Assembly (NCBI GenBank): GCA_001643675.2
Contig: LSRY02000015.1
Span: 1,674,001-1,738,000 of the forward strand
Direction: 5' to 3'
DNA from: Monocercomonoides exilis PA203
Taxonomy: Eukaryota; Protista; Preaxostyla
DNA: 64,000 bases
Below are positions 12,601-36,000 of this stretch, in pieces (the first letter of the stretch is position 1; each line of letters begins with the position of its first letter). A model generated the notes under the pieces. The model was not told the DNA's origin, made no database searches, and was given only the letters and a program-made list of their open reading frames with translations. A program made the translations under genes and the position numbers.

Positions 12601-15600
12601 AAGCATCTTAGGCAAGCTGCAAAACATTTGGCGAGCTGTGTGAAAAGACAGACAGCAAAAGAAAGAGGCAATCCAGCAACTGACGGCTTCGGGAAGGAAG
12701 GCGGACGAACAATGGAATATGGCGCGAAAGTAGGCCTGCTGAAGTATGGAAGAGATAGAAGAGAATCAAACGAAGCAGTTGCATTTCCATTGTCAGGAGA
12801 AAGACTCATTGATGAAACTGTTTGTGATGAGGACTCTTGTTTTTGAGCTGAAAAAATGTTGAGTGAAGGAGGAACAGATGATGCAGATAGAAGACGGATT
12901 GAAAGAGCATAATGAAGTGGCGAAGAGAATGTGGTTTGCTTTAGAAAATTGAGGGATCCATCACTTTTGACTGGGGATGATAGAGGAATGCAGCTTGGTT
13001 GGATCAGAGGTGCTGAAGAGTTTATTATCACGATTGGCTTTGGCACGCTGTGGATTTGACTGAACTTTGAAGCATCCTTATGCGTTGTATGTGAAAGAGA
13101 TAACAAAGAGTTTGATTTGAGCAATGAAAATGAAGGAGAATTCGAAGAAATGCTCGATGAAAGTTCAGTAGATGATGGAGTCGATATGCCAAAGCGCATT
13201 GCAGGAGAGTTTCCTCCATATGAATTGATGTCCACAACTTCTTTCACTGGAATGTATTCAGATTCAACATCAAATCGAAGGAAATAATGCGTTGGGTTCA
13301 TTGGCTTTGGACATTCTTCGCACAAACTGGTCAGAAATGATAAGAGTGATAAAAGTGCAGTAAGCACATCAAACTGTGCCAATCTTCCAACATCGTCCAA
13401 AAGCAGAAGCTCGTTCATCAGCTCAGATACGTTCTGCTTTGCTGCTTCTTTCTGTTCAACAACAGCTCGCAGGAAGTGCGATGTGAACGGGATTTGTGAT
13501 GCATTGGTTTTCTTGTTTGAAAAAGAAGACTGATTTGATGATGACGTTGATGAGGATGTCGACTCTTCATATTGTTCAGATGCTCTCAATAAAAACATCG
13601 CTTCTGTCACACTTTGTTCAGCCAGTCGCTCTTCAAATGTCAATCCTGACGCTCCTTCGTTTCTCAAATTATTTGCAGAGATCATTGAAATAGCAGGATT
13701 AATAGAATTTGTCGAATTTTGAATAGTGTTTGCCACATTTAACGTTTTGTCTGTTAATCGTTTTCTTTTTCCTTCAAGAAGTGAATGGGTTGCATCTGTG
13801 CTATGAGTAAGATAAGCAAGAATATGAGTGATTATTCCCATGATAATAGCGCAAAGCAAGTGGACAGTAGTGGATGGTATAAGCTCAAAAGGAGCAAAAT
13901 TTAACTGTTTGGAATCAGATTCAGAAGAAGGCGAAGAAGAAGACGAAGATGAAGAGAGTTGCACTAAAGAAAGAGGCTTGAAAACTTCTATCGGAACACC
14001 TTCAGATATTGAACGATAGACAGCTCTCAGAAGAGGAGATGGCAGCACAATTCTGCGCGAGCTGGAACTTAAATCAGGAGAAGACAAAGGAAGACCATCA
14101 GCCAATGAATGTTGTTGAGACAATGACGATGCTGATGCATTGGCAGTGTTTGAAGAAGAATCTGTTCCTTGCCCGTTGTCTCCCATTTTCATAACTTTCA
14201 TCATTTCTTCGTTTTCGCTTTCATTTGTGGTGCGATTCCAGATGGGTTGGGCTGGAATCATCGAGCGGCATAAAGCTGCAGTTGATACAAATCGCTTCCA
14301 TGAAGCTAAAGTGCGGATTCGCGAGTTACGTCTGAATGAAGATGCGTTCGAAAGACGCATCAGATAAGGAATAAAGTGTATCGGAAACATATGCGTGTTT
14401 CGATTTTCGCTTGGTAAATCTGAATTTTTGAGAAAAAAAGACAATCAAATATCAAATTAAAAAAGAATTATGCAATAAAATTCATTTGAAAAAAAAATTT
14501 TTTTCAAACCAGAATTGTCAAAGCATCCCATCATCAGAGCTTTTTCAAAATATGTTGCATGGAACTCAAACATTGCATCGCCTGAATAAAGTGAACGTTC
14601 TGGAGTTGAATGAGCACAACGATATGAATCAAGATCGACTCCATTCATTCTGCACACAAATGACAAAAGAGAACGGAAAGAAGGCTCAGCTGAGATTGAT
14701 TCCGTGACAGACTCCATAAGCTCTGTGAGACAAGCAGGCGAAAGAAGAGATCCAACCACATTTTTCATCTGCTTTTCCGCATCGTTAAGAAGTTTGAATG
14801 CTTTTTCAATGTAAACTTCAGGCAGCGATTTGTCAGGAGCCTTTGTTGAAGAAGAAGCAGCTGTTGAAGTTGTATTTGTAGCTGTTTTTTCTTTGCTTTC
14901 CATCGTTTTTTCTCCTTCAAGTAGCACGCGAAGAATCTGTCGTTGTGCCTCTCTTGCAATTGATGAGAGTTCAATCGTTATCAAATCAAATGCCACACTC
15001 CGCGCTGTCTCAAGTGCTGAAAGATGGCACGTGGCTCTCAAAAGACGCTTCATTGCAGATGCAGTCCGTTTTGGTGACAATGATGCAAAGCCTCGAGGCG
15101 TGCGGCGGATGGATGATGATGGAGATGCTCCGTGCGGCGAAGCACTTTGCATTTGATCAGCAAATTCTTGTGAAGAAGATGTGGACATGAAAAATCCTGC
15201 TGCTGAAGATGGGCGCAACGTTCCATACATCTCATCGTTGGCTGAATCTTCTGGATCTTCGTCGTTGCTATAGACAGACGATGAAGACGTTACAGCTGGA
15301 ACCCAAAGTGGCTGCTTTTGAGCTGTTGAGTCGTTGAATAAAGAAGCTGATTGGGTTGAATTCATCAAAGATTGGCTGCCTTTTGAGGAAGACGAATTGC
15401 TTCTGTCTTTTTTCAGCTCTCTTTCCAGCGTTCTATCAAATTCATACGATGCATCGTCCAACAGTTGGAAATTAGCAGATGACATTTCAGTTTTTGCTCT
15501 TGTTTTGTTTGATAGATATTCATTTTCTTCGTTTTCTCCAAATGGACGATCGTCGTTTGGTTCATCTTCTTCTTCATCGTCTTCTTCCAAATCAATGGGG

Positions 15601-18600
15601 GATGTTGAAGATGACTCGGATGATTCAGATTCTTCATCTTTATCATCACTCTTTTCGTTCCCATCTTTGTCATTTGCTTTTTCATCTGCATTGTTTCGCT
15701 TTTGTTCCTCTTTTTGCATTCTGCGTTGGTTTTTCTTCATCTCCCGTTTCATTCTTTTCATTTCTCGCATTTTTCTATCTTCGTATTGAGCTTTCGACTG
15801 TTCAATATCCATCGTTTCTGCTTTGTCTATCTCTTCAATCTTCTTCTCTTCTTCTCTCTGTGATTCCACCAGTCTCATAGCTGCTTCCTCGTCAATGTTC
15901 ATATCATATCCTGTTGTTGACAAGCGCGTTGTAGAATCCAAGCAAATCTCATTGCCTCTTCTGAGCGACGCCGATAAAGAAACAGCACTTCCTCTTTCGC
16001 CTCTGTCCCACTTCTTCAGCAAATTTCTCAAAGTTCGGAACAAAATCGAGTCTTCTGGCATTTCGTTAGAATAAGAAGCATCTTCCGAGCCTCCTGTCAA
16101 TTTAGCATATCTTTGAAGTCTGTAGCGTCGCATGTCATTTGAGGCATATGCACTGAGAAGACATGATGGAGTCAGTACAAGCTGCCACTTCAGCTTTTGC
16201 TTCCTCATCGTTCTCAGCTCTTCCATAACATCTTTGTTACCATCTGCTTCATCGCTGTCTGGAGATCTTCCATCATTCGATTCGATTGTTCCTTTAATCA
16301 ATTCTTTTTCTCTGCCTTTCCAAAGCCATTTTCCTTCTCTTCTTCCGCTCATCATTCTCAGCTTTTTCCCAACACCCACAGCAACTCGCTGAATCGCTTT
16401 CCAAAATCCCTCGTGCACAACAAGAGCTTCAACAGCTGCGCCAAAAATATCGCACTTCTCCCACATCTTTCGGAGCAAAAGCATCAGTCCAGCAAGCAGC
16501 GCTGGTCGCTCGTTGGCCGTTTCCTCCAAGTGATCGCAAAGGAGCGACAATGAGAATCCTAAGAATGAATTCTCTGATAACACTGCTTCAGGATTTGAAT
16601 TTATATTTGATGTTTTTTCATTCAAAATATTGCTGCGATTTCGTTTTTGATCATCCAATTGAAACACATTCTCTACAAACAACTTTGCCAGCAGCGGTTG
16701 ATAATCAATTGCAGCTGATATGAACTCAACAACAGCAGCAGAAACAGAATGTGGAGTGTTTGGATCTGCAAACCTCATAACGATTGCATCTTTCAGTTGC
16801 ATTGCCTGTTTTTCGCTGCCAAAGAAGCGAATAAGCGGAGGCAGCTGAGGGAATCGAATGCTCATGCGGCACAGATGAGTTAATATTCTTGTTGAGACAG
16901 TTGAAATCTTGTTGTTGGATTGGTAGGCGACATATGATGCTAACACAAGCAGCCATTCGCGAGGCTCCTGTTTGGGCAACTGATCCGAATGCTTTAAAAT
17001 ACTTTCAGAAGAAAGCTTTGATGAGTCGTTTGGCTTTCTTGTTTCAAGAAGCTCCTTCAAAAGTTTGCTTGCAGCTGTTTCTTTGTGCTCTATCTGTTTA
17101 TTGACAGTATCATCATCCTGTGAAGGCACATCAACAAGAAAAGTGAGAATGAGCCTTTCAAATTGTGATAAATCCCTTAAAGCAGAAGCTGAGGAAGAAG
17201 AATTTGCTTGCTTTCCTTTCACACTTTCGTTTGGTGATGAAGCAGTCGCAGATGTATTTGACACATTCGAACCGGATCCTATTCCATTCATCATTTCGCT
17301 GACTTTTGATTCCTGCTCTTTCACCGTTAAATCGCTTGGCTGTGAGCTTTCCTTCTCTCTCCAATCAAACTCAAGTGAAATCAGCACAATCTCCACAACT
17401 TCCAAACACGCAGTAACTGTCTCTTCCAACACAGTTGCAATATTCTGCTGTCCAGATGCAGAAAGCTGTGTTGCGATCTCCATCGAAAGGCCTCCCGATG
17501 CTGTGAGTGTGAGCAGAGCCTTCTGCAGCACAAGATCTGTTTTGAGAGAAGCCAGAAGCTCAGCACGCGATTGATGGAGTGGGTTCGAGGATGGTTGAAT
17601 GTTGGCTAAATGTTGGTGAGCAGAGTTCCGTTTCATCAAAGTAGATTGAATCTCTTCTATTTGCAAGCTCTGGCTTGTTCCAATGTTTCTTGTTAGGGCA
17701 GCAATAGCAGTGTTCTCCATCGATGTGGCTTCGCGCGATGGAAACAGCTGTTTTTCTTTTTCGTCAGCTGTTATACTGTCTTCAACGGAAGCCATGAACA
17801 TATCGTCAATCCCATCGTCATATTCTTCAAAATCTGCAAATTCTTGCCATCTTCCTGGCTGATTGTTAGCATCGGCAGATGTGACATTATTCCACTTGCT
17901 CTGAATATCATCATTTCTCTTTTTGATTTCTTGATTCCGCTTTGCTTCTTCTGCCTTTGCATTTGCGTTCCTCGCTGCTTCGAACTTCAATCTTCTAATT
18001 CTCCTCTTTCTGTTCGAAATGGCCACTTCAATCGGAAGCGACTGGAGCACAAAGCGGAACATGTCTGTGCAGCGGAGCATTAAAAGCAGCTTGGTCAATT
18101 TGTTGTGGTGAATCCAGACATTTGGAATCATCACAAACACATCACGACGAATGATTGATATCATCTCAGAAAGAAGCATTGACGGATTGCTTAACGGAAA
18201 GCTCGACAAGAGAGAAGCAACAGATGGATGTGAATCAAAAGAAGAAATGGATAAAAGATCTAAGGGCACAGATGATGATAAGGAGGATGAGGATACAGTT
18301 GATGAATCATGTGCAAAAAGTTGATTAGGCTCCTCTTGTTTCAGAGGAACTGGAACAGAAGATGAGAGTTCAGTTGCCTTTGGTACAGCTGCTGTTTCGG
18401 AGACTTCTTTGATGATTGATGAGACAGAAAGAACTGGCAGCTTGATGCATCTTGCTGAAGAAGCAACAACGCGGCACAACCTCAGCAAAGCCAGCAAAGT
18501 TTGATAAGACCCTATTTTGGATTCTGTCGAGGTAACAATGTTAATTGCGTCGTGTATAACAGTGTTGAGTTCAACGTTGTATGTTGAGAACAACGAGACA

Positions 18601-21600
18601 AACGAATTTGTAATTCGTTGCATCTCAATTGCAACTTGTTCTGCTATTTTTCTTTTTGTTTGAGCTGATTGAATGTTTAATTGTTCTTTGTTCATGTTCA
18701 TATCTGGTTCAAAAATTGAATTTTCGCATTTCGTCAAACTTTTTTCGCTTCCGATTAAACAATTGCCCAATGAATTCGTTCTGTATTCTGGTGAAATGGT
18801 TCCATTGCTGGTCACAAACTGGTTGGGGCAGCACGACGAGCGGCAAAAAGGAAGCCAGCATGGAACTAGGAGAGTGAGTGTGCGAAGTGCAAGAGAAGAC
18901 AGCTCAAGCAGCTGTTTGCGCTCAGATTCAGAGGAAGAAGAGACAACAGACGATGAAGTGAGCTGAGATGATATGGAATGGATGAGCAAGATACACACAT
19001 TTGCCACAGAAACTGGTGGAGGTTGTGTTTGAAGAAGGCTGTTTGCTTGTGAAGTGCTGAGGATTGAAGAAGATGTTTGTGAAAGAGAAGAAGAAGAAGA
19101 AGAGAATTGAGATGAAGATAATGGTGGGAAATGTGGTGATGACTGAGAAGCAAGTCGAGAAGAATCATCAAAGATTGAACAAGGAGTAGAAGAAGAAGTA
19201 TTTGTAGAAGTCGTAGATTCAGCTGAAATGATAGAATTCATTGAAGAAAGCTGTTGGTCAATCACTTTGTGAATCGGTGGATGTGCACGAATAAGCGAAT
19301 GGATGAGAAGAAGAGCAGCGTGTGTTGTGGAAAGAGATGAAACAGATTGCTCTGCAGTGACTTTCTGCCAGGAAGAGCAGGAGTCAGGCATCTGAATGGG
19401 TGGATTGAGGATGTCTGAAGGAGATCGCGCAGAGGAAAGAGAGAAGAACGGGCGAAGAAGGAAAGGCCAGCCAGGATATGGTGATGGAGGGAAGAAGCGC
19501 ACAACCAGACCGATTGAGTTCAGAAAGTGTAGAGGAATAGGCAAAGTGAAAGAAAGCGGGAGTGGATCGTCGATTGCACGTGCTAGTGGAACACATCCAA
19601 CAATTTGTCCTTCAAAGCCAGATGGAATGACAACATTTCTGTCTGCTGCAAATTCCTCTTTCAGTTTGATGAATGGAATGTGCTGGGCATTCAGCAGCTC
19701 TTCTTCATAAAGAGCTGCTTTCTCCTGCAGCGCCTCCATTTCAATCTGCCCCAAAGCATCAAAAGCGCCTCCTGCCAATCCATCTTTCGTCAAATTCTGC
19801 TCTTTCCCCAAATTGTTTTCAGAGTGTTCCCCTGCAAATACTTTGTTTAACGACATCTGCACATCTTCATCCCATTTGATCTCCTGTCCTTCTGAATTCA
19901 CCGATTTCCATCCAAAACTGGCTCTGCCGTGGAGCAGATGTGACACAGGAACTATAACAGCCAATGACTCCATGTGATTGATTGCTTCACAGACTTGTGA
20001 AGCAGACTGAGAATCCTGCGAAAGAGAGGAATACAATCGGATGGCAGGTAAGCTGTCAGCTGGAAAAGAAGACACAGAATCTGAAAGGAGAGAGGCCAAA
20101 GACGGATTGGTTGTAGAGAGTTCCCAGTAAAGTCCAGCGAGTTTCGGGTGGTGGTATGTGACAACAGAAAGGAGAGAGAACAGAGCAGAGGCAGAAGGAA
20201 CGTTGGTGTGTGTGATTTCTGAGAGATATGTCAGCAAAGAGCCGAGTGTAGGGCGAGGCGGCTGCTGCGGCAGTGAAGTGGCAAGGGCAGAAGAGATGGC
20301 GTCAGACGAAGGAGAAGGAAGAGGAAGTGAGTCATCGTGCTGTTGAATAACTTCGATGATGTCTTGAGGTATTTGAGACAGAAGAGAAGGGAGAATGAGC
20401 TTGGAAGAGCGAAGTGTTGATGTGATAACACAAATGTACTCCATCAGAACGGTTTTGAATCCAAACAGGACTTGTTTGTGTGTCGCGGAATGCCGAACAT
20501 TGAATGAGGAGCCAGCACCCCGCGAAGAATAATTCGATTTCCAATCAAAAATGTTATTCCTTGTTCTGTTTGCTTCTTGTTCTGTTTTGTCTGCATTAAA
20601 CAGCCACATCGCATCGTTCCATTCACTTGTATCATCACCCAGCCCACTTCCGTCCTTTCCGTTCATCCATTTGTCATTCTGCTTCCAGTTGCATTCTTCT
20701 TCCTCCTTTTCTTCTTCTTCAAGACGTTCAATCAAATACGCAAAGGGCTTGTGCTTCAAAGCAAATGAGGCCAGCTTATTGAGTGTGTCAATTGTTGTTG
20801 CCTGTGGAGTTCCATTCATAATCGCCTCTGTGTCACCTTCCATCAATGTTGGCTGAGATAGAGAGAGAGGCGGAAGAGACGAAAGAGCTGTCTCACCCTG
20901 CTGCCCCATGCTTCTGCTCATTGAGTCAATTGGCATCCCATCAAGCCCGTTCATTCCTTCTCCTCCTCCAAATGCCCCAAACTGATTGCTTCTCCCTCTC
21001 TCGAAACTGTCGCAATTCTTATCAAATTCGTTCTCTCCTGCCATCTCTTCGTCTGCATTTGCTGGGTCCAGATCTTCCAGCACACCGCACTGCACGTGTT
21101 TCAGCACCAGACAGCACCAAGCAACGCAGATGACAGAAGCAGTAGCAGTCGAAGCAGAGCAGGCAGCAGAATTCGCATTCAGGTCAGCAAATCCAAAGGC
21201 CACTGCGCTTGGAGATAGAACAGCAGATAAAGCATCGAGGGAAGAGGAAGAAGACTGTTGGAGTGAAGAGGCAGTCAGTGCAGAAGAAGAAGGATCAAAA
21301 GAATGAAAAGAAGAAGCAGAAAGAGAAAACGAGTCAAATGAATCGAAAGAGCCGAATGGAAAGCTCAGAGAGCGGTTGAACTGAGAGCTGGAAGAAGCGC
21401 TGGACTCGATCCATTGGATGAAGCTGTTCAGAATCAGCTTCCGCTGCTCGTCAACCAGCACAAACGGATGCAGCTCTGCATAGTCGATTGAATTGTGTGA
21501 AATGGGATCACTTGTGAGTGAGTGCTTGGTGACAGACAGAGTGGCCTTTGATGTGATCGCAGAGGAAGCACGTGACTCTGGAAGAGAATGGATAGAAGAA

Positions 21601-23698
21601 GGTGATGCGGGCATTCGAGCAGGCTGCAGAACGCGGTGAAGGTTGAGTGATGGCGAGGCAGGCGAAGTTGCCAAGGGAACTGGGGCGATGGCAGTTGGGG
21701 TGAACATTCGTGTGGAAGATGGAGACGCAACAACTCCTGCTGTGCGCTGTTTGGGAGTAGAGAAAGGGCGAGGTGAGTGAAGAAGGCCTGGTGATTGTGA
21801 GATGGGAATCAGCTGTGTGGGCAAATGAAGTGAGGCAGGCAATGGGAGTTTTGAGGCGTTCACAGAAGAAGGTGTGCGACGATGACGTGAAGAAGCGCTT
21901 GGAGCTAAAGGAGGAACATTTTGAGAGTTTAATGAATTTGTTTGGCTTTCCTTTGGAGAGCTGTGGGCAGAGAATGTTGGCGAGCACAACTCTTCTTTCA
22001 ATTTTCCTTCTTTTTTCTTTGTTTTGGTGTTGATGCTTCCTCTCTCGCTTTCGAAATACGCTGCATTTTGTTCTGCTTCTTTGCCATTCTTTTTCTCGCT
22101 GAATGTTGCTTGAGACGCAGAAACAGGCTGCTTCGACTTCGCAAGCGAGGCTTCCAGATCAACTGCATATTCCAGCCGCATCGCCTCAATCAGCACGATC
22201 GTTGCACGCAGCTGGATGGCACGCACAGCAGATGCTATTTGACTCAGGATGTGCGGAGTCATTGAGTGCTTGTGGTTCGCTTTTGCGCTTTTAGATAATT
22301 GTGTTGATGTTGAACTAGCTGTTCCGTTTTGATGCCCCGCAGCTGAAGAAGACGGTTTCACAGAAGCTGCAGATGCTGGAGGAAAAGAAAATGGAGAAGG
22401 GTTGTTCGGCTTTGCGGCTGGAGGCAGGGTTTGAGTAGATGGCGTTGATTCATTTAAGGGCTGGATCCAGCATCTTTCAATGAAAATGGACAGTTTGTGA
22501 TGCAGCATTGATGTCTTTCGTATCACTGTGGAGTAGTCTTTCGCCTGCATCACACACAAGTCTGTGTATGATGTCAGAAACAGAGCATCGTACAAAAGAC
22601 TAATTTCTCGCAAAAGAGAGACACAAAAAGTTCCGCGGTCGAAAGGCATCTCGAGAATTGATGAAAAATCAGCTGAAGATTGATTCGATACTCCTCCTAA
22701 TTTTGTGCTATTTGATTTGGTTTTGTCTGGAATTGCTCCAAAAGTTCCTGTTGGAGAAAGATCAATGTCAAGGATGTAATCAATGCATGAGATAATTAAT
22801 CCAATAAATCCAGTAAGTTTGTGTGAATCTAAAGGATGAAGAAGATCAGAGGGTTCAAAAGAAGTAAATTTCTTCAGTCCCCCAATTGAAGATGTCGGAG
22901 ACGGCTTTGTTTGAATTGCTTCTTTTGCAAATGGAGAAGTTGTTAAATTCTTCGCAGGTGATTGTGTTGGAGAAAATACGGAAAGTCCATCCAAAACCTC
23001 CCCAGAAGGCGGAAGATTAAGCTCCTCTGCTTGCTCAGATGGATTGAGCACGTTTGATATCTGATTTAAGTAGTCTTGAGTTGTTTCTGATAAAATATCA
23101 TCAGTGTTGTTGGCTTTCAAAACTAATGTTGTGTATAACTCCAATAAGCTATGTCTCTCATTCATATAAAACAAAAAAAGTTGATTGATAAAATTCTTCA
23201 TATTATTTGGATCAATCTGAGGTAAATCAAAATCATTTACGGTATGTTTATCCTGTGAATTAACAATAAAAAGCAAACTTCTCGTATCCAAACTTCTTGA
23301 ATAAAATGATGTAGCAACTGAGCTGTTTTAATTTCATCGAGTCGCTGATTGTCCAATTTTTATTTGTTAAAATTAATTTTTCGCAGAGAAAAAAGGAAAT
23401 ATATTAAGAATGCAAATTTTTTCAAAATTTTTTCAAAATTGCACATATACAAATGCAAGAAACATACAAAATGTGAACTTATAGCACATATAAGAGCTTG
23501 CTGTTCTTCTGTTATCTGTATCTCTTGAGAATCAACAAAAATTATCCCAGATTTCAAATCTTGCTTCGATTTTTCATTTGGCAATGAAAAATATGTGCTG
23601 AGGGTCGAGATTGCTTTCCCCTTTTCGTCGTCCAAATACGCAAAGAAATCATTTTCGTCTCCTTGTTGAACAGCGAAAAGAGTTTTGGCAAATGACAT
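6606..23698 (-). CDS. NUP188: Nucleoporin Nup188-like protein, about 5,612 aa; predicted exons 23468-23698, 23294-23344, 14510-23252, 6606-14419
   Basis: ORFs 23360-23698, 14457-23291 and 6606-14444 join in frame through phase-compatible GT-AG introns (23345-23467; 23253-23293 or 23253-23278; 14420-14509). Spliced N-terminus FSLPNEKSKQDLKSG...ISSHFRLDEIKTAQLL...FLFYMNERHSLL and internal blocks LYWE..NPSLASLL..SVSSFP...IRLYSSL, ESKIGSYQTLLALLRL, LVLASYVAYQSN and VVEFISAAIDYQPLLAKLF occur in the order of recalled Nup188 conserved blocks. Confidence 0.82.
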
Positions 23699-28272: not shown

Positions 28273-31200
28273 CTATTCACGAACAGCGAGAGAACTGCTC
28301 CTCTCAAAGCTGCATCCTTTGTCATCAACATAGTACTGCAAATCAATTGCATCTGACATCGTTAACTGAACTGCGCCAGCTGGAGCATGACTTATGAAAA
28401 TTCGTTTTATTTCAATTAGAGTTGGGCGTGTATTTGCTTGGGTTGCTAGGCTCCTCTTTATTAACTGCAAATATGTTGTTTCAATGGAAAATAAATTTGG
28501 TCTCTCTCCATTGATAATCTTCTGTCCAGCTGTTTCAGCCTCATAGTCTCCAAATGGGATTTGAAGAGTCAAGCACTCCCACAGCATCATCCCAATCGAA
28601 AAGGCAACTGATTCCTTTGTTGCTCCCATTTTCTTATTGATCTGCAGCTCTGGCGACTTCCACCTCAAGCACTCTTTTTTGAAATCATCTTCATCCTCAA
28701 AGGCTGAAGAAGGAAGAGAGTCACTTTCGTCATCACTTGCAGAAGTCACAACAGTTGACGAAGAGATAGAGGATGAATCTGAGTCATCATCAGACAAGAA
28801 GTCTGAGTGCATCACAATGCAAATCACCATATGCTCTGAGAAGAGAACAATGTGCGGACTTAGATTGGCAAGAGATTGAAGTGGGTTGTCCATTTCATCA
28901 AATGAATGAAGCGCAAGATTAGCCACCCAGAACAGGATTTGGACAGCTGTATATTCTCTCTCCTGAAAGGTGCCAATCGCCATCTCTTTTTTCTCATTCC
29001 TCCCATGCAATAACATGAACAACGAATCCCTCAGATCAACAATCAACTTCTCATGAGGGGATGAACAGGCCATCGCATCCACTAGATTCGACATCGATGA
29101 GGTGGTTGGACACAGATCTTCTCCTCGAACAAATGTTGAATCTGAATCAGTTGAACATGTCGAAGATATTGATGGTGATGGAGTTCTCTTCCTTATCTCT
29201 TCTTCATCAACCTTCTCAAGAACCCAATCAGGAATCTTGTCTGAATCTCTTCCCAGAATATTTTCTGTTGATCCGCTTTCAGAAAGAAGATGCTCCGATG
29301 ACTCAGAGTGTCCTAAGCTTTTCGCATACACTCTTTTCTTCATCCTTTCTTCATTCTTCTTCTCTGTCTCTCTTTCTGCTCTTCGCCACTGCTCTTCAGG
29401 CGATATCTCCATCGTCACCATCTCCATCAGTTTCGGATCCTTCTTCACAGTGTCATTCACTATCTCTTCCAATTCTTCTGTTCTTCTCTTTTGCTTTCTC
29501 CATCGTACAATGAATATTATTGAAACAGTGAGAACAATCAAAAGAATAACAACAAGCGCAATAACAATCAACAACCAATACGATTTTCCTTCTTTTCCTC
29601 GTTCAACTGCTTTATCACTTTCTGGTTTTGATTCTGTTTTATTCTTCAGTATCTGTGGAGAAGTTGCAGCCAATTGTTTTCCAAACAGAATCATCACTGA
29701 TACCTCTGTTTCATCTGCAACCTTTGAAATATTTTCTGATGGGATTATTCCAATCACTTCAGTTTCTGATACAAAACCATCTTTCTCAAACTGATGAATC
29801 TCAGCCAACTCCACATCTCCTGTTTTATACACAAGTCTGAATGACAAGTCACAAGGCACAAAAAGTGATCCCTCGAATTTCACAACAACATCTCTGTCAT
29901 TTTCACTGATTGATACCTCTTCCAATTTGGAAATGAAGAAAGGAGATGACCTTTCTGCTGTCATTCCTCCAAGAGTGCATCCATCATCCAGGATCCAAAG
30001 AGATAAATTGGGAAACACTCCATCTCCCCCTTTCAAACTGGAAATGGTCAATGAGGCAGACTCCGAACAAATGATGTTTCGACGAAGAGAGGGATATTTT
30101 TCAATGAATGGATTGTTGTTCAAAAACTCTCCTTTCTCGATTGTCACATTGCCAGCAGACACTGACAATCCACCCGATGAAGCATTCGAAATTGTCACAT
30201 ATTTCATCATTATTGTTGAGTTTGTTGAATGAACAAGAGACCCACTCCATTGACAGATATCTGTGATTGCATTCATATTTTCAGTTTTGCTTTCTTTCAT
30301 AAGCACTCCAACAAATCTGCACAAATCCATCGAAACGTTCGTTGCATTGCTCAATTTCATAACACTCCCTTTGCCAGACATGGAACAACAGTTTGAGCAA
30401 GAGCAATTAGAAAGAGATATTTGAGCAGAAGTTGAAAAAGCAGTGAGAACAGAAGTGCCTTCTGAATTTCTTGAACAGTTGTTGAATGAGGAGCTTCCAA
30501 TGGAAATTGTTCCTGAAGTTGAATCATTTATTGAAAAGATGCAGCCATCAGACAGTTTCACTCCATCTGCATCAATTCCATTGAATACAACTTTTTTGCA
30601 TCGATCGATGACAAACACATTTCTCATCGCTTCAAAATTATCCATTTTCACATTTGTCATTGATATCTCATCTCCTTTTAGCAGAAACGAAGGCTTCTTG
30701 AACGAAAGCATCAATATTAAGCAGTTATCAACATGAAGAATACCAATTACAATTGTCAACAATGTTGAATTAATAAAAACAATAGGTTGATTGTTGCTTA
30801 ACCCTCCAGCAGAAGAGAAATTAACAAATAAAAGAGAAAGCTGTCCACTTGCTTCATGAATGACTGAACTTCCAGAATAAGAAAACGACTGGCCAAAGTT
30901 GAATTTCAATCTCTCAAACCGAACTTTCTCTGATGTTGTGATAAGACCGCCCTCATTGATATTAATTGTTGAGTTCAGATGCACCAAAGCAGTTGATGGA
31001 GATTGCAATGAGCGGATGATCACATCATGCACATCACATTCCCCATTGATGATAGTTTCCTCTGAAATCAACAGCTGAGAATACGATGAAGGAATGATAT
31101 GCTGAACTCCAATATCCAATGAGTGGCATGGTGCACTCAACTCTCCACATTGCTTGCTGTCCGCGTGATTATCCGCAACAGAAGACACAAATATCGTCTC

Positions 31201-34200
31201 ACTCTGATATTTCACAACTCTCAACAGAAGATCCTCTTCCCCAACAAACGAGTCTGTTGTGGCACCCCATATTGCAAGATCCTTCACAAACGGTGTTCTG
31301 AAATCCAAAAGAAATTGTTCTTCAACTATTTGCGCATCGATTGAATAGCATTTCACATACACATCTCTTCCTCTGAATGCAGAGTTATCTTTGAATGTGA
31401 TATTCAACAACAAAAACTTCAGAGGATGCTCAGCTGTCGAGGTGCATTCCAGAAACAGCCACCCGCCTCTTCCAGTGCTCGAGCAGAAACATTCAGAAAT
31501 CGTGCAAAATGAACAGTCAAACTTTCCTCCCTCATTCAACACAGAAAACATCCCTCCTCCCTTTCCACACTTCGTTCCTCCACACTTCTTCATCGTTGTG
31601 TTTCTTGTCACAATTTTCAATGGCTCATCTTCAATTTCGTTCCAAATGATAGGAATATCATTGGTTGCATTCTGAGTGACTTCTTCAAACAAACTCCACT
31701 CAATGACAATATCTTGTTCCTCTTCATTTGTCTCTCTTCTTGAACTCTTTGAAATACTCAATCCGCTTGCTCCTTCCAGCTCAACATTTTTCATTGTCAG
31801 GTTTTTCACATTCAATATCGTTGTTGACAGCACAGAAATAACATCATGCGAAAAACAAAGTGACTGAATCGTCACCAATTCCAATTGAACAGTTCCTCCA
31901 TCTGCTTTGATCAACCCAATGCTAATTATTTCTTCTCCGCTTTCTTCCATTTTTGTGAAGGAGCAGTACTTCACAGTCAATAATCCCTCACTTGAGTCAA
32001 CATGAATGAAAAAATTGACTCTTCCTGTGAATGAAGATGGAACAATAAAGTCAATCAGCTCGAGATTTGAAATTCCAGAAATCTTCATTGCTGCATCCTC
32101 TGCTACTTCAAGTGATGAGAGACACTCCAAAACACACTGATTGTTATCATCTGATTTTATTGAAATTCCACTCGCATCAACACATTTTTTAAGAATCGCT
32201 TTTTCAATGATGTTAATATTCTTTTCATTTCCCTCAGGCAATCGATCCATTGAATAATCAATTGAAAGGCAAGGATAATCCGAGAATCCACAAGTGCAAA
32301 CATCTTTCCCATTGCCCCCAATAAATATCTCTGAGCCAATTGCGAACCAGAAATACACCAATGGAATGGCATTCAATGTATCATTCCCATCAAACCCTCT
32401 CATCGAATCCAATGAAATATCTGCCAGATGTTCTGACACAAATGGAAGAGAAGTGTTTGTGATGCTCTTCGTCAAGTTGGATGATTCAACAAACAGGTCA
32501 TTTCCATATTTTGCAACATTTGGTTTTTCTGAATCAAAAACAGGAGATGAGATCACAAATAAAGAATCATCATCAATCAGCTTCAGTGCCATCCCTCCCC
32601 CAAAGCCAGTCTTTTCTTCTTCTGCTGGTGCCGTGCATCCTATGAATGTGCATGAAATAATATTCAATTGAGTATTCCGTTTCATCTGCACATTGAGAGC
32701 ACCTCCTCTGCTTTCATCAGCCAGCACTGAGCATTCATCAAAATCACATTTTTCAATATTTATTTCTGTGTTCGTATTTTCATCATCGCTATTATCAAAG
32801 CTTATGCAGCCTCCATTTCCAGTTGTTCTTTCTATTTCTGTGAAATTAGAGTTCGTCATGTTCAACCACAGAGTGCTCATTAACTCAGCCTTTATTCCAC
32901 TTCCAGACAACGAGATCAATGAATTTCTTCTCAAATCAATCGATGAAGCGGAGAATTTGTCGATTGTCAAAATTCCCGATTCAACAGACAAGAACAGAAA
33001 TGTCAATTCAGATAAAGGATCTTGAAGGGAAATGGAGCAATGAGACAAAGTCAGTTGTGAAAAAGATGATATGAAAGTGGAGTGTGATGAAAGAGATGGA
33101 GGAAGAGAGAAGATGAGTTTTGATAATTCTGTTTCAATTCTTGTTGTTATCATCGCTGAATTGGATGTTTCACTTGAATCGGAGACTGACCAGCCACTTT
33201 GATCATCATTTCCTCTGATTTCGTGTTTCTGCCCTTCAAATGTCAATTCATCACTCATCAAAATCATTCCATTCACATTCACTTTCTTTGTTCCTGTTTG
33301 TCTTGTGAGTGAATGTTTCATTGTTAAACAAGGGAATTGGACAATTCCACAGCGCGAATGATTGGATGCCTCAATATTGCTCACAAAGATTTCTTCTGGT
33401 GTGGGAAGGAGATAGATGCACAGAGGAATGGCCACACTGTTGTTTCCGTTGTCATATCCCCTCACTCTGTCAACAGAATTCAAAGAGGCTGTAACACATG
33501 TAATATTTTGTGACTTTGCAGTCACTTCCAGATTTGGTGAAATGACAAAAATATCTCTTCCCCATTTGGCTGTGTTTGTTCCGAATGAAGAGGATATCAG
33601 GAAATTTGGATTCTCATTCAATAATCGAAGAAGGATTCCTCCTCCAAGACCATCTGTTACCGAGCAATAGCATTCATCAAAAGATCCACCATTCACTTTC
33701 ACTTCATTCTCATTCCCGACAAATAGCTTCATTGATCCTCCATTCTCTGATTCTGTGCTTCCACATCCTGAAAATGAACAAGAATTCAAATTAGCATTGA
33801 CCTTGTCGTTGGAAAATGAGATGACAGCAGATCCACTCGTTGTTCTCTCAATTCCACTAAACGTGCATTCGGAAAGTGTCAATGAAATTTCATTTGTTGA
33901 AGAAAGCGAAAACAACGAAGTTGTGGAGATAGTCTTTTCCCAGTTCACGTTTTCCATCTGAAACATTCCACTCTGAACATTGATCAGCTCTGTGGTGAAT
34001 GCTGTTTGTGCGGAGTGTCCGCTTCCAGCAGATATGTTCAGTCCACTTATATGCATCTCTCCTGTTTCAGTAATCTCAAACAGCCTTGAACCACGATTAT
34101 TTGTATGTACCGAATCATGCACAAGAACAAAATCCCTTGCAGTCAATGTGCCTGTTGAGACTGAAAAAAGAGACAACCCAGATGCTTCAAATTCTGTTTG

Positions 34201-36000
34201 GATTGTTGAGCTTAAATCGCTTTGGCCATATATTGTGAAAGTGTTGGAACTGCAGTCCACACTCCTGGTCTCTTTTATTGTTCCTAAAAAGACTTCGACT
34301 TTGGGAACTAAGCCTGGAATGAGTTGTGTGACGCAACGGCTGATCGTGCAACATGGATGACTTTCATCCAGTCCACAGGCAAATGTGTCTTTGGCATTGG
34401 GTTCTGTTGTGGTTGAAGAAACAAATCTGATCACTCCGAAATCGTTTCGAAGCCAATCGCTACGATCAGCAAGTGAACTGTAACTTGAACTAACTCTGTT
34501 TGTTGATTGCCTTGTAGAATAGCAACTTGGATCAATATTATTAGATGTTGAATCATGAAGAGCAATATCATGCCCACCTATAATGCATGTGTTATTGTGG
34601 AAAAAACAATAAAAAAATAAAATTCCGTTGTTATTTGTATTTAGCAACAAGCAAACTGCTCCTCCAAAAAGTGAATAGCAATGATAAAATAAACAATTTG
34701 AGAAAATAATTTGAATTGCACCGTCCCAATGAAAAATTGCTCCTCCGCAAGAAGTTGAAGAATTTGGCGCTTGACAAAATTTGAAGAATGAGTTAATAAC
34801 GCATTTTTTTTGTTTTTGAGTAGTTTCATTTAAAATACTTATTCCTCCTCCATCATTGGCAGCAGAACAATTATTAAAATAGCAATCATCAACCATCGGT
34901 TGAATATATATTGTTTCAAACTGAATCCCTCCTCCACCCCAATCTGTAGTACCATATGTAACACATTGATCAAATGTTGAATGAAGCACAATGCATTCAG
35001 CGATTTTCAAAGCATATATTCCTCCGCCTCTTGAAGAGGAAGCATTGCATCTAGTGAAAGAACAATTTTCAACAGTCAAAATTGCATTTTCATTGTCATG
35101 AACATAAAGAGCACCCCCTTGTGGTGCTGTGCAATCAGTCCATTCACACAATGAAAAGGATTGACTATCTGTCAAATTCATTTGTCCTTTTTTCTGAAGA
35201 GCATTCATTTCTCTTTTCCCGAAGCTTACAGTTGTGTTTCTGCAGATGAATTCATGTGAAGAATGCGATCCACTCGAGATTCCTCCTTCAAACGCATTTA
35301 CACACGAATAAATGAGGCAATTCTCCATCGAACTTCGAAAACATGAATGCTCCATGTAATAATCACTTTTCTTGCAAGATTTCACAGACATGTTCCTGAA
35401 GGAACAGTCATTGATCTGTTCGCTGTGGCTCTTCCCTGAAACAAGAAAATTGTCTGAAGAAGAAACAGCCAGATCCGATATGATGGAATTTCTCAAAATG
35501 GCAATATTTGAATTATCAGATGAAAAAACAAGACTGGAAGGGTTGACATTCATTTGGGGGATCAAAGTCATGTTTGCGAGGCAGATTGACCCACTTTGCA
35601 AATGAAATGGTGATTCCGACTTTTGGAAGGAAATGCAGGAATCCAACGCCACATTCGATTTATCTGTTATTAGAATAAATGGTGTGGAAGAATATTCAAC
35701 TGCCACATTTTTCAGTCCAACTGAAGAATTGGAAAAGCGAAAAAATGAATAAATCGCTGTGCATGTTCCTGCCTTCCATCTTTTCATTCCTAATGCTTTT
35801 CTCTGTTCTGAAAAATAATTATTATTGCCATTTGCGAAAAATTGTGTATCAATTGAGTTGACTTGACCAATATATAAACAGTAATTTAAAGTAATTCTAT
35901 TTGTTAAAATACCTGGGTTTTTAAATATGGCTGTTCCATAAATGACTTGATACTTAAATGTCTCTGCTAATATCAGGCATGCTAAAAGGAGCAAATGCAT
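28273..36000 (-). CDS. Full-length receptor-like type-I membrane protein (2575 aa): signal peptide, GGA(I/L/V)-type beta-helix region, four tandem Cys-motif ectodomain units, TM, tyrosine-kinase-like pseudokinase C-lobe
   Basis: N-terminal MHLLLLACLILA. GGALYV/GGGIY/GGAIF/GGAVC repeats. Units begin DTFACG..HPCCTI, NHSRCG..FPCLTM, DVCTCG..YPCLSI, DSKQCG..APCHSL. TM YWLLIVIALVVILLIVLTVSIIFIV-RWRK. LRWKSPEL, FSIGMMLWECLTLQIPF. Confidence 0.92.
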   Translation of the reverse strand: MHLLLLACLILAETFKYQVIYGTAIFKNPGILTNRITLNYCLYIGQVNSIDTQFFANGNNNYFSEQRKALGMKRWKAGTCTAIYSFFRFSNSSVGLKNVAVEYSSTPFILITDKSNVALDSCISFQKSESPFHLQSGSICLANMTLIPQMNVNPSSLVFSSDNSNIAILRNSIISDLAVSSSDNFLVSGKSHSEQINDCSFRNMSVKSCKKSDYYMEHSCFRSSMENCLIYSCVNAFEGGISSGSHSSHEFICRNTTVSFGKREMNALQKKGQMNLTDSQSFSLCEWTDCTAPQGGALYVHDNENAILTVENCSFTRCNASSSRGGGIYALKIAECIVLHSTFDQCVTYGTTDWGGGGIQFETIYIQPMVDDCYFNNCSAANDGGGISILNETTQKQKKCVINSFFKFCQAPNSSTSCGGAIFHWDGAIQIIFSNCLFYHCYSLFGGAVCLLLNTNNNGILFFYCFFHNNTCIIGGHDIALHDSTSNNIDPSCYSTRQSTNRVSSSYSSLADRSDWLRNDFGVIRFVSSTTTEPNAKDTFACGLDESHPCCTISRCVTQLIPGLVPKVEVFLGTIKETRSVDCSSNTFTIYGQSDLSSTIQTEFEASGLSLFSVSTGTLTARDFVLVHDSVHTNNRGSRLFEITETGEMHISGLNISAGSGHSAQTAFTTELINVQSGMFQMENVNWEKTISTTSLFSLSSTNEISLTLSECTFSGIERTTSGSAVISFSNDKVNANLNSCSFSGCGSTESENGGSMKLFVGNENEVKVNGGSFDECYCSVTDGLGGGILLRLLNENPNFLISSSFGTNTAKWGRDIFVISPNLEVTAKSQNITCVTASLNSVDRVRGYDNGNNSVAIPLCIYLLPTPEEIFVSNIEASNHSRCGIVQFPCLTMKHSLTRQTGTKKVNVNGMILMSDELTFEGQKHEIRGNDDQSGWSVSDSSETSNSAMITTRIETELSKLIFSLPPSLSSHSTFISSFSQLTLSHCSISLQDPLSELTFLFLSVESGILTIDKFSASSIDLRRNSLISLSGSGIKAELMSTLWLNMTNSNFTEIERTTGNGGCISFDNSDDENTNTEINIEKCDFDECSVLADESRGGALNVQMKRNTQLNIISCTFIGCTAPAEEEKTGFGGGMALKLIDDDSLFVISSPVFDSEKPNVAKYGNDLFVESSNLTKSITNTSLPFVSEHLADISLDSMRGFDGNDTLNAIPLVYFWFAIGSEIFIGGNGKDVCTCGFSDYPCLSIDYSMDRLPEGNEKNINIIEKAILKKCVDASGISIKSDDNNQCVLECLSSLEVAEDAAMKISGISNLELIDFIVPSSFTGRVNFFIHVDSSEGLLTVKYCSFTKMEESGEEIISIGLIKADGGTVQLELVTIQSLCFSHDVISVLSTTILNVKNLTMKNVELEGASGLSISKSSRRETNEEEQDIVIEWSLFEEVTQNATNDIPIIWNEIEDEPLKIVTRNTTMKKCGGTKCGKGGGMFSVLNEGGKFDCSFCTISECFCSSTGRGGWLFLECTSTAEHPLKFLLLNITFKDNSAFRGRDVYVKCYSIDAQIVEEQFLLDFRTPFVKDLAIWGATTDSFVGEEDLLLRVVKYQSETIFVSSVADNHADSKQCGELSAPCHSLDIGVQHIIPSSYSQLLISEETIINGECDVHDVIIRSLQSPSTALVHLNSTININEGGLITTSEKVRFERLKFNFGQSFSYSGSSVIHEASGQLSLLFVNFSSAGGLSNNQPIVFINSTLLTIVIGILHVDNCLILMLSFKKPSFLLKGDEISMTNVKMDNFEAMRNVFVIDRCKKVVFNGIDADGVKLSDGCIFSINDSTSGTISIGSSSFNNCSRNSEGTSVLTAFSTSAQISLSNCSCSNCCSMSGKGSVMKLSNATNVSMDLCRFVGVLMKESKTENMNAITDICQWSGSLVHSTNSTIMMKYVTISNASSGGLSVSAGNVTIEKGEFLNNNPFIEKYPSLRRNIICSESASLTISSLKGGDGVFPNLSLWILDDGCTLGGMTAERSSPFFISKLEEVSISENDRDVVVKFEGSLFVPCDLSFRLVYKTGDVELAEIHQFEKDGFVSETEVIGIIPSENISKVADETEVSVMILFGKQLAATSPQILKNKTESKPESDKAVERGKEGKSYWLLIVIALVVILLIVLTVSIIFIVRWRKQKRRTEELEEIVNDTVKKDPKLMEMVTMEISPEEQWRRAERETEKKNEERMKKRVYAKSLGHSESSEHLLSESGSTENILGRDSDKIPDWVLEKVDEEEIRKRTPSPSISSTCSTDSDSTFVRGEDLCPTTSSMSNLVDAMACSSPHEKLIVDLRDSLFMLLHGRNEKKEMAIGTFQEREYTAVQILFWVANLALHSFDEMDNPLQSLANLSPHIVLFSEHMVICIVMHSDFLSDDDSDSSSISSSTVVTSASDDESDSLPSSAFEDEDDFKKECLRWKSPELQINKKMGATKESVAFSIGMMLWECLTLQIPFGDYEAETAGQKIINGERPNLFSIETTYLQLIKRSLATQANTRPTLIEIKRIFISHAPAGAVQLTMSDAIDLQYYVDDKGCSFERSSSLAVRE

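Follow-up and report, generated by a model that had tools for sequence, protein, structure and literature searches.

The cassette systems of antigenic variation, such as Anaplasma msp2, Neisseria pilE/pilS, Borrelia vlsE and the VSG mosaics of trypanosomes, rely on one or a few expression sites, on an archive of silent, truncated donors and on switching within a clone. Regional gene conversion has been described in the protocadherin clusters of fugu, where a discrete boundary separates a homogenised part, with a GC content at third codon positions (GC3) of 54-69%, from a diversified part (EC1-EC3) with a GC3 of 38-45% (PMC1852091). This study concerns a window, i.e. the whole analysed stretch of 64,000 nucleotides at positions 1674001-1738000 of contig 9 (LSRY02000015.1) in the 82.3-Mb, 101-contig genome of Monocercomonoides exilis, and in particular the receptor-like gene MONOS_9988 (28273-36000 of the window, minus strand). 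Within this gene, the segment 34450-34971 (minus strand; amino acids (aa) 344-517; 522 bp), hereafter the block, is probably a real, sharply bounded hypervariable module of a mosaic multigene family, set in a more uniform scaffold.

The likeness to the clustered protocadherins of teleosts (fugu, zebrafish) is considerable. Both are tandem or dispersed families of surface receptors in which part of the coding exon is homogenised at synonymous sites, with a discrete boundary to a diversified part of the ectodomain that is thought to carry specificity, and in both GC3 is higher in the homogenised part (36% against 25% in M. exilis, and up to 68% against 20-30% in a distant paralog which starts at 59979 on the plus strand and runs off the window). 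The differences are equally clear, since in M. exilis the variable part is an internal block of 522 bp, with homogenised sequence on either side and with halves that are reshuffled in turn, the protein folds as a beta-helix instead of cadherin repeats, and the family belongs to an oxymonad without a described sexual cycle, is far larger and is spread over many contigs. Regional gene conversion which is escaped by a reshuffled variable module is a known kind of arrangement, comparable to the protocadherin clusters and, loosely, to the hypervariable regions of other surface families, and the mechanism is familiar from such families. What is new with respect to the literature searched is the description of the ectodomain and of its bounded module in the largest gene family of the organism.

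That family comprises 332 'tyrosine kinases', nearly all of them TKL (PMC6759080), and the TKL-kinase family overlaps the 'unclassified repeats' of the genome (PMC8767320). Both genome papers describe it by its kinase match only (PMC6759080; PMC8767320). By term search, a transmembrane region is not mentioned in PMC6759080, nor gene conversion in PMC8767320, and a literature search combining 'Monocercomonoides' with 'gene conversion' retrieved nothing on this receptor family.

MONOS_9988 is carried by an intron-less open reading frame (ORF) of 2575 aa, and the identification rests on an exact-block comparison, in which the public protein (P0001) is identical to the ORF over aa 144-388 and 476-2575. 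The translation consists of a signal peptide, an ectodomain of about 2100 aa with repeated beta-helix modules, in which Cys-x-Phe-x-x-Cys ... Gly-Gly-x-Ile rungs recur, a transmembrane helix (aa 2141-2165; 29506-29580) and a C-terminal domain resembling the C-lobe of a kinase. The Pfam Pkinase profile matches this protein only at profile positions 162-258, corresponding to the C-lobe, with 18.3 bits against a cut-off of 31.7, and in the paralog at 9-4343 the same C-lobe part passes PF07714 with 37.7 bits. All 121 database relatives of the protein come from M. exilis, many of them with PF07714, and its homology to annotated MONOS_ members places it in the TKL 'protein tyrosine kinase' family. 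When aa 1-600 were searched against the genome in six frames, 1873 first-look candidates emerged, 73 of which were scored; these are 60-76% identical over aa 1-600, and about three quarters of them are full-length open genes. A search with the core of the block alone found at least 150 block-bearing loci, mostly within ORFs of 2400-3100 aa. MONOS_9988 is one of several hundred receptor-like genes of M. exilis which combine a beta-helix, further ectodomain modules, a transmembrane helix and a kinase-like domain limited to the C-lobe.

Analyses at the DNA level were conducted on a codon alignment of 4.8 kb (aa 1 to ~1100) from the 30 closest paralogs; along the whole length, the family was compared at the protein level only, from public models which are often truncated. 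Fourteen of the genes form an array on contig 1, and among 70 between-type pairs of this array, divergence in 6-codon windows rises from 14% to 41% between aa 343 and 344 and falls from 21% to 9% between aa 517 and 518. By Nei-Gojobori estimates, the median synonymous divergence (dS) reaches 1.34 in the block and 0.52-0.55 in the scaffold, and the non-synonymous divergence (dN) 0.28 and 0.12, respectively; the difference at four-fold degenerate sites is 0.46 against 0.26-0.30. The excess divergence anticipated by an initial annotation of this DNA is thereby borne out, with 2.5-fold more synonymous divergence in the block, and the same annotation's suggestion that the region escapes a conversion homogenising its flanks agrees with the contig-1 array, where the genes are 6-12% apart in the scaffold and 2-37% apart in the block. 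The dN/dS ratio, which it proposed to plot as well, is not raised in the block (0.21 against 0.24 in the scaffold). No sign of positive selection was found in the block with simple dN/dS methods applied to the 30 paralogs over aa 1-1100, with values of 0.2-0.46 in close pairs, 0.62 in the most variable block columns and 0.97 in variable scaffold columns. Elsewhere in the gene, aa 45-120 combine an ordinary dS (0.50) with a dN/dS of 0.56. At a distance threshold of 10%, the blocks of the 30 genes fall into 25 clusters, and the nearest relative of the block of MONOS_9988 is only 85% identical, so that no recent copying into it is apparent.

The edges correct the extent originally assigned to the module, from CEW to CFFHNN. 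The SFSLCEW anchor (35140-35160) belongs to the scaffold, together with two conserved rungs, and this flank (aa 281-343; 34972-35160, minus strand) has a family identity of 0.80-0.86, the peak of the N-terminal 600 aa, with a GC3 of 0.25-0.29 and a low frequency of TpA dinucleotides; CFFHNN (34591-34611) is a conserved island inside the block. The cassettes of the two copies in the window had been described as sharing only GGA-type repeats and anchors. The copies are only 14-32% identical in every segment, and this pair alone does not reveal a cassette; the close paralogs do. Separately, the patch adjoining the conserved flank, 35161-35220 (aa 261-280; K[GE][QKR]x[ND]xTxSQ), exists in two or three discrete forms, whose distribution among paralogs is uncoupled from both neighbouring windows; its behaviour resembles that of a mini-cassette or of a patch that is often converted.

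The history of the block is uncoupled from that of the scaffold. In comparisons of distance matrices from 40-codon windows, scaffold windows correlate with each other at rho 0.4-0.7, even across the core, and the four windows covering aa 341-500 reach only rho 0-0.2 against all scaffold windows. Among individual loci, the pairs L009/L010, L010/L013 and L007/L013 show 3-15% divergence in the scaffold and 30-50% in aa 341-520, and L002/L003/L005, L008/L011 and L007/L014 differ by 0-8% within aa 341-520 and by 5-17% outside. In eight pairs, similarity is higher in the block than in the scaffold. At synonymous sites, dS is 0.08-0.13 in the block against 0.22-0.38 in the scaffold for L002/L003/L005, and 0.03 against 0.10-0.23 for L007/L014. 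In the scaffold tree the 14 genes of contig 1 are united in a single clade (98/99), whose branches are short and star-like, and in the block tree they are scattered over at least three deep clades. Approximately unbiased (AU) tests show that the block data reject the contig-1 group, which is defined by location (p = 1.7e-4), and that the scaffold data reject the block clade joining this contig-9 gene to L002-L005 (p = 1.9e-6), a group which, like some others submitted to the test, was chosen after inspection of the tree. MONOS_9988 itself has a block nested among the contig-1 types and a scaffold lying outside them.

Reassortment extends into the block. In MONOS_9988 the block is a mosaic, closest to L002 over aa 341-360 (3%), to L004 over aa 361-400 (5-8%, against 13-15% for L002) and again to L002/L003 over aa 401-440 (3-8%, against 28% for L004). 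A conserved island, SNCLFY (aa 434-439; 34684-34701), where the third-position difference is 6% compared with 40-60% on either side, divides the block into a left half of about three beta-helix rungs (aa 344-433; 34702-34971) and a right half (aa 440-517; 34450-34683) with the CFFHNN island and the predicted end of the beta-helix, all on the minus strand. The two halves have different trees. The SNCLF codons, TCA AAT TGT TTA TTT, are kept at the nucleotide level across block types which are otherwise saturated, TCA AAT TGT being nearly invariant in the 30 paralogs and the serine codon being TCA in 28 of them. Pairs which appear recombinant around the island are L010/L014 (4% to the left, 24% to the right) and L013/L017 (11% and 28%). 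The left-half data reject the right-half clade L004+L008+L011 (AU p = 2.4e-5), the evidence of the right-half data against two left-half clades is weak (p = 0.075 and 0.038), and an AU test of L010 as a half-block recombinant was not significant (p = 0.43). The conservation pattern makes the island a likely crossover point, and the persistence of its nucleotides may reflect either a crossover anchor or a constraint acting on the nucleic acid. At the protein level, the left half is likewise the part with the lowest conservation in another subfamily, one with 38-42% identity to that of MONOS_9988.

These observations support, with high confidence, a mosaic history of the family. The block is exchanged between scaffolds, whole or piecewise, and is not homogenised; it is not closed to recombination, and the same patchy exchange is found across the whole scaffold, so that none of it is specific to the block. 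In this respect the first reading of the sequence, as a module diversified or exchanged apart from its scaffold, was sound. The family also displays what is expected of concerted evolution, namely a greater similarity of paralogs at synonymous sites in the homogenised part than in the variable part, a discrete boundary with incongruent genealogies and an effect of genomic neighbourhood, the last being weak inside the contig-1 array, where scaffold homogenisation and physical distance give a Mantel correlation of rho 0.18 (p = 0.046). The divergence of the block is explained by older lineages and not by faster evolution. An explanation that dispenses with recombination, by a higher local mutation rate or by relaxed constraint, would fit the parallel rise of dS and dN by ~2.3-2.5 fold with dN/dS unchanged, and it is confronted with the incongruence of the block and scaffold trees and with the eight pairs whose block is the more similar part. 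Moreover, pairs that diverged recently differ no more in the block than in the scaffold, L007/L014 showing 0% difference over 140 block codons, and for this reason a raised mutation rate is excluded. Hypermutation, considered as a separate candidate, is ruled out by the same three lines of evidence, and the whole explanation deserves next to no credence.

The initial annotation had likened the locus to an antigenic-variation repertoire. The likeness consists of a central hypervariable region, conserved flanks able to act as homology arms and segmental conversion mosaics, and the corresponding explanation would be a programmed diversification, in which the module is rebuilt somatically from donors, with the conserved flanks and the SNCLF island as dedicated anchors. 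The sharp, recurrent edges, the nucleotide-conserved island inside the block, the near-identity confined to the block in L002/L003/L005 and the presence of a different block in almost every gene are all compatible with it, and copies with an early nonsense codon, described below, could mark silent donors. The comparison is not supported by the nature of the copies. Block loci are mostly complete genes of 2400-3100 aa with their own signal peptide, transmembrane helix and kinase-like tail; the few short block fragments carry stops and resemble pseudogenes, and the orphan cassette copies that had been suggested as a check turned out not to form any visible archive of silent, truncated or donor-only fragments. 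Furthermore, the closest possible donor of this gene's block is the 85% identical relative already mentioned, the patchy exchange is not restricted to the block, and no recombinase or expression-site feature was found. Programmed diversification is very improbable on this evidence, and nothing indicates programmed switching.

The early nonsense codons are an observation in their own right. In eight of the 30 close paralogs (L008, L012, L013, L015, L019, L022, L023 and L024), a nonsense codon, TAA and once TGA, occupies the same alignment column, codon 38 from the methionine of the signal peptide, homologous to approximately 35887-35889 of the window, and L011 has one six codons further downstream. 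Intact paralogs have K, L, C, S or Y at this column. The affected copies contain no further stop in the next ~1060 codons, and in the wider set 17 of the 73 scored members have a stop within aa 1-600 and yet retain open frames of more than 2500 aa. The pattern at codon 38 is strongly non-random; the codon may have been spread by conversion, and the copies may be silent but intact. In addition, about ten partial matches to the block, on contigs 80, 37, 35, 91, 10, 19, 1 and 36, all have a similar starting point, at block residue 50-70, and extend as far as the end of the block; some are in short, stop-containing ORFs and others at the start of ORFs of 1600-2000 aa. Such a pattern could come from truncations or breakpoints recurring at this place, or be produced by the local alignment itself.

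For aa 101-700, an AlphaFold2 model based on an alignment of 37 sequences, with a mean predicted local distance difference test (pLDDT) of 76, has a right-handed parallel beta-helix fold. A regular helix with three strands per rung, repeating E-E-E, is predicted over aa ~110-520, with a pLDDT of 85-93 over aa 280-520, and is followed by a low-confidence linker (aa 527-541) and then by another domain. According to this model, the block makes up the five or six rungs with which the first, N-terminal beta-helix ends. In the alignment, a framework of Cys, Gly-Gly, Phe, Asn and Gln-Lys is nearly invariant and the variation lies between these positions. The best Foldseek matches of the model are all right-handed beta-helices of carbohydrate-binding proteins (E 2e-4 to 1e-2, probability 0.8-0.97, template modelling score ~0.2), among them PL6 alginate lyases, phage tailspikes or depolymerases, and AlgG; the identity is ~10%, catalytic motifs are absent, and the similarity is one of generic fold only. 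No Pfam or NCBIfam profile searched at E <= 10 exceeded its threshold in the N-terminal 460 aa. The repeat of the Chlamydia polymorphic membrane proteins (PF02415) reached 14.9 bits against a cut-off of 20.6 (E = 0.032) on a single 11-residue stretch, which is below threshold. With these proteins and the Pmp-like proteins of Trichomonas, the M. exilis receptors have in common GG[AG]I-type repeats on the rungs of a parallel beta-helix and a large surface family; they differ in having Cys-x-F-x-x-C rungs, a type I membrane topology and a kinase-like tail, and in not being autotransporters.

The block is also distinct in nucleotide composition. The hand counts which first drew attention to it, with about 37 TpA in 34441-34980, 14 in 33901-34440 and 8 in 35221-35640, proved exact. 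For the same three segments the GC content is 0.33, 0.43 and 0.40, and the observed-to-expected ratio (o/e) of TpA is 0.62, 0.32 and 0.21. This core (34441-34980, minus strand; aa 341-520) has the lowest GC3, 0.189, among 1193 in-frame windows of 180 codons from nine long ORFs of the 64-kb window, and no window of this size in the gene contains more TpA (gene mean 15.7, standard deviation 5.8); the step exceeds what chance would give. Codon positions 1 and 2 are unchanged, with a GC content (GC12) of 0.40 in the core and 0.41 outside, compared with a GC3 of 0.19 and 0.36, and the composition step is for this reason largely synonymous. Of the 37 core TpA, 22 straddle codon junctions, where the TpA o/e is 0.75 inside the core and 0.32 outside. 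Synonymous resampling with the gene's own codon usage gives 35 expected TpA for the core, where 37 are observed, and 25 and 23 for the flanks, where 14 and 8 are observed, which means that TpA is depleted 2-3 fold in the flanks and not at all in the core. Amino-acid content raises the expected TpA per 540 nt merely from ~25-30 to 35. As the full cause of the step it is ruled out, given the equality of GC12 and the minor part for which resampling accounts, and the objection foreseen in the initial annotation, that amino-acid content might fully explain the step, does not hold. The values of the core are close to those of the intergenic DNA in the window (GC 0.24-0.30, TpA o/e 0.52-0.58).

The step is shared across the family, as had been predicted. 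In the codon alignment, all 30 close paralogs have a lower GC3 in the block (0.25 against 0.36), and 28 of them have more TpA there (5.4 against 2.6 per 100 nt), with GC12 nearly equal. The same step had been reported in the distant paralog starting at 59979, and it is present there: over 60789-61418 (plus strand; aa ~271-480 of that gene), GC3 is 0.20-0.30, compared with 0.37-0.43 upstream and 0.48-0.68 downstream, and TpA per 180 nt is 8-13, against 0-6 elsewhere. Along the whole of MONOS_9988, family identity correlates with GC3 (rho +0.41) and with TpA (rho -0.40), and with the block excluded the correlations are +0.32 and -0.33 (p about 0.005). Among the scaffolds, the more homogenised ones of contig 1 exceed the others in GC3 and contain fewer TpA (p about 1e-4). 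Elsewhere in the same ORF, aa 1771-1950, 2011-2190 and 2491-2550 are as variable as the block at the protein level (identity 0.43-0.67), and in MONOS_9988 a low GC3 or a high TpA frequency is found over some of these regions.

Introns of M. exilis have a GC content of 25-28% (PMC8767320), and part of the block is treated as intron in public gene models. The MONOS_9988 model, which starts at Met144, removes 261 nt (34576-34836, minus strand; aa 389-475) as an in-frame GT..AG intron with the ends GTATTT...TATAG and a GC content of 0.29, as is evident from the exact-block match between P0001 and the ORF. The MONOS_11273 model (L020) drops ~450 nt of the block (L020:1765-2211) from an uninterrupted frame of 2607 codons; the removed segment was read by eye as 453 nt with GTATGT..AG ends, the automatic boundary scan having found none. 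If this part of the block were a real or alternatively spliced intron (exitron), its composition would be trivial, and the two models together with the GC content of introns speak for such a view. The coding evidence speaks for protein. Nearly all of ~150 loci have a frame that stays open across the block, dN/dS is 0.2-0.35, 64 structural columns (Cys, Gly-Gly, Phe, Asn) are near-invariant, and the block is modelled as regular beta-helix rungs with the high pLDDT given above. In addition, the two supposed introns agree neither in position nor in length, and the closest paralogs of MONOS_9988 lack its 5' GT. An intron or exitron is for these reasons improbable. The open frame in nearly all loci, the dN/dS of ~0.3, the confidently modelled rungs and the 5' GT missing from the closest paralogs make it likelier that the in-frame 'introns' are annotation artefacts, due to a predictor misled by composition.

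Public models of the family are affected more widely. Of 18 models matched to loci, 16 start at an internal methionine between aa 45 and 596. Models of this kind, including those of L006, L008-L014, L016, L018, L019, L023, L024 and L029, most of which start at aa 109-596, are without signal peptide and often without the variable block, even in cases with an open frame upstream. A BLAST map of 'deletions' in the public proteins was discarded, as single skips were smeared over the repeated rungs, the skip in MONOS_9988 being a single one of 87 aa; the sole trustworthy outcome of the map is that skips cluster in aa ~285-494. The MONOS_9988 model is left without 87 residues of the module, that of MONOS_11273 without ~150, and many others start downstream, and proteome-based studies therefore miss the variable part.

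The link between the mosaic history and the composition is held with moderate confidence. The strongest competitor assigns the composition to codon choice which tracks protein conservation, through translational accuracy or through selection against TpA, cryptic poly(A) or cryptic splice signals, and lets the block drift towards an AT-rich mutational equilibrium under weaker synonymous constraint; the mosaic history would be real but separate. Conserved columns do have a higher GC3 than variable ones, both in the block (0.285 against 0.18-0.21) and in the scaffold (0.374 against 0.28-0.29), GC3 follows amino-acid identity over the whole gene, aa 31-120 have a low GC3 without a high dS, and the composition of the block equals that of intergenic DNA. 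At equal conservation class, however, GC3 in the block is still 0.06-0.12 lower, the shift is seen for 14 of 18 amino acids and even in invariant Gly, Ile, Val, Leu and Lys codons, and the mixture of classes predicts a GC3 of ~0.32 where 0.25 is observed. Block and scaffold also share their mRNA and expression level, and in the paralog at 59979 GC3 reaches 0.6-0.68 downstream of its block. Codon constraint as the main cause is unlikely, while retaining some weight.

The preferred reading is one of concerted evolution with an escaping module. Short-tract gene conversion between paralogs acts along whole genes, and in the scaffold it homogenises the copies, especially within a chromosomal array. 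In aa 344-517, old variant lineages persist, with almost every gene having its own version, and the block or either of its halves is occasionally moved between scaffolds through crossovers in the conserved flanks and islands. The persistence of the block may be due to a divergence of 30-40% between types, which would impede homologous repair, to selection against homogenised copies, or to both. If conversion is GC-biased, the block would receive less of it than the scaffold and would sit near neutral composition, rich in AT and TpA at silent sites; a smaller share of the effect may come from variable codons being generally lower in GC3. The odd composition is, on these grounds, probably a by-product.

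Several points weigh against this interpretation, above all against its compositional part. The association between conversion and composition is correlative only. Higher GC3 in the converted part is observed as a matter of composition, the repair bias itself is an assumption, and the polarised third-position changes do not follow the pattern expected from it: weak-to-strong (W>S) and strong-to-weak (S>W) changes number 310 and 302 in the scaffold and 55 and 20 in the block, counts obtained by parsimony with distant outgroups and biased toward exactly such a W>S excess in the block. The dip in GC3 begins ~70 codons upstream of the divergence edge, in conserved rungs; the N-terminal aa 31-120 combine low GC3 with low synonymous divergence; outside the block, GC3 and four-fold divergence give rho -0.24 (p = 0.29, set of 1100 aa); and the larger share of variable columns explains roughly one third of the drop in GC3. 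Selection for diversity is likewise an assumption, positive selection being undetected. Finally, all copies derive from one Oxford Nanopore Technologies (ONT)/Pilon assembly, in which small patches could include polishing artefacts, and the DNA-level results are those of aa 1-1100 in 30 paralogs only.

A more far-reaching combination of these elements can be formulated, in which the block would be the specificity part of an actively maintained combinatorial repertoire, the SNCLF 15-mer and the flanking rungs would be dedicated crossover anchors for rung-by-rung shuffling, the ~1/4 of copies with an early nonsense codon would form an intact but silent donor pool, and the intron-like composition could even allow regulated removal from the mRNA. 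Taken jointly, these propositions have a small chance of being correct.

Outside the receptor genes, the window contains two adjacent ORFs on the minus strand, 6606-14444 (2612 aa) and 14457-23291 (2944 aa), 12 nt apart, serine-rich and of low complexity. Neither has a Pfam match, and the two may constitute a single very large gene.

MONOS_9988 belongs to the largest gene family of M. exilis, which was the first eukaryote demonstrated to have no mitochondria. As the scaffold trees reflect homogenisation, trees of this family are not to be built from the scaffold alone. The GC3 step within the gene provides indirect evidence for a GC-biased repair of recombination intermediates in an oxymonad. 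The sharply bounded, copy-specific module plausibly sets the binding specificity of each receptor, and it offers a concrete candidate for the ligand-recognising part of these proteins, be the ligands gut bacteria, host glycans or other cells.

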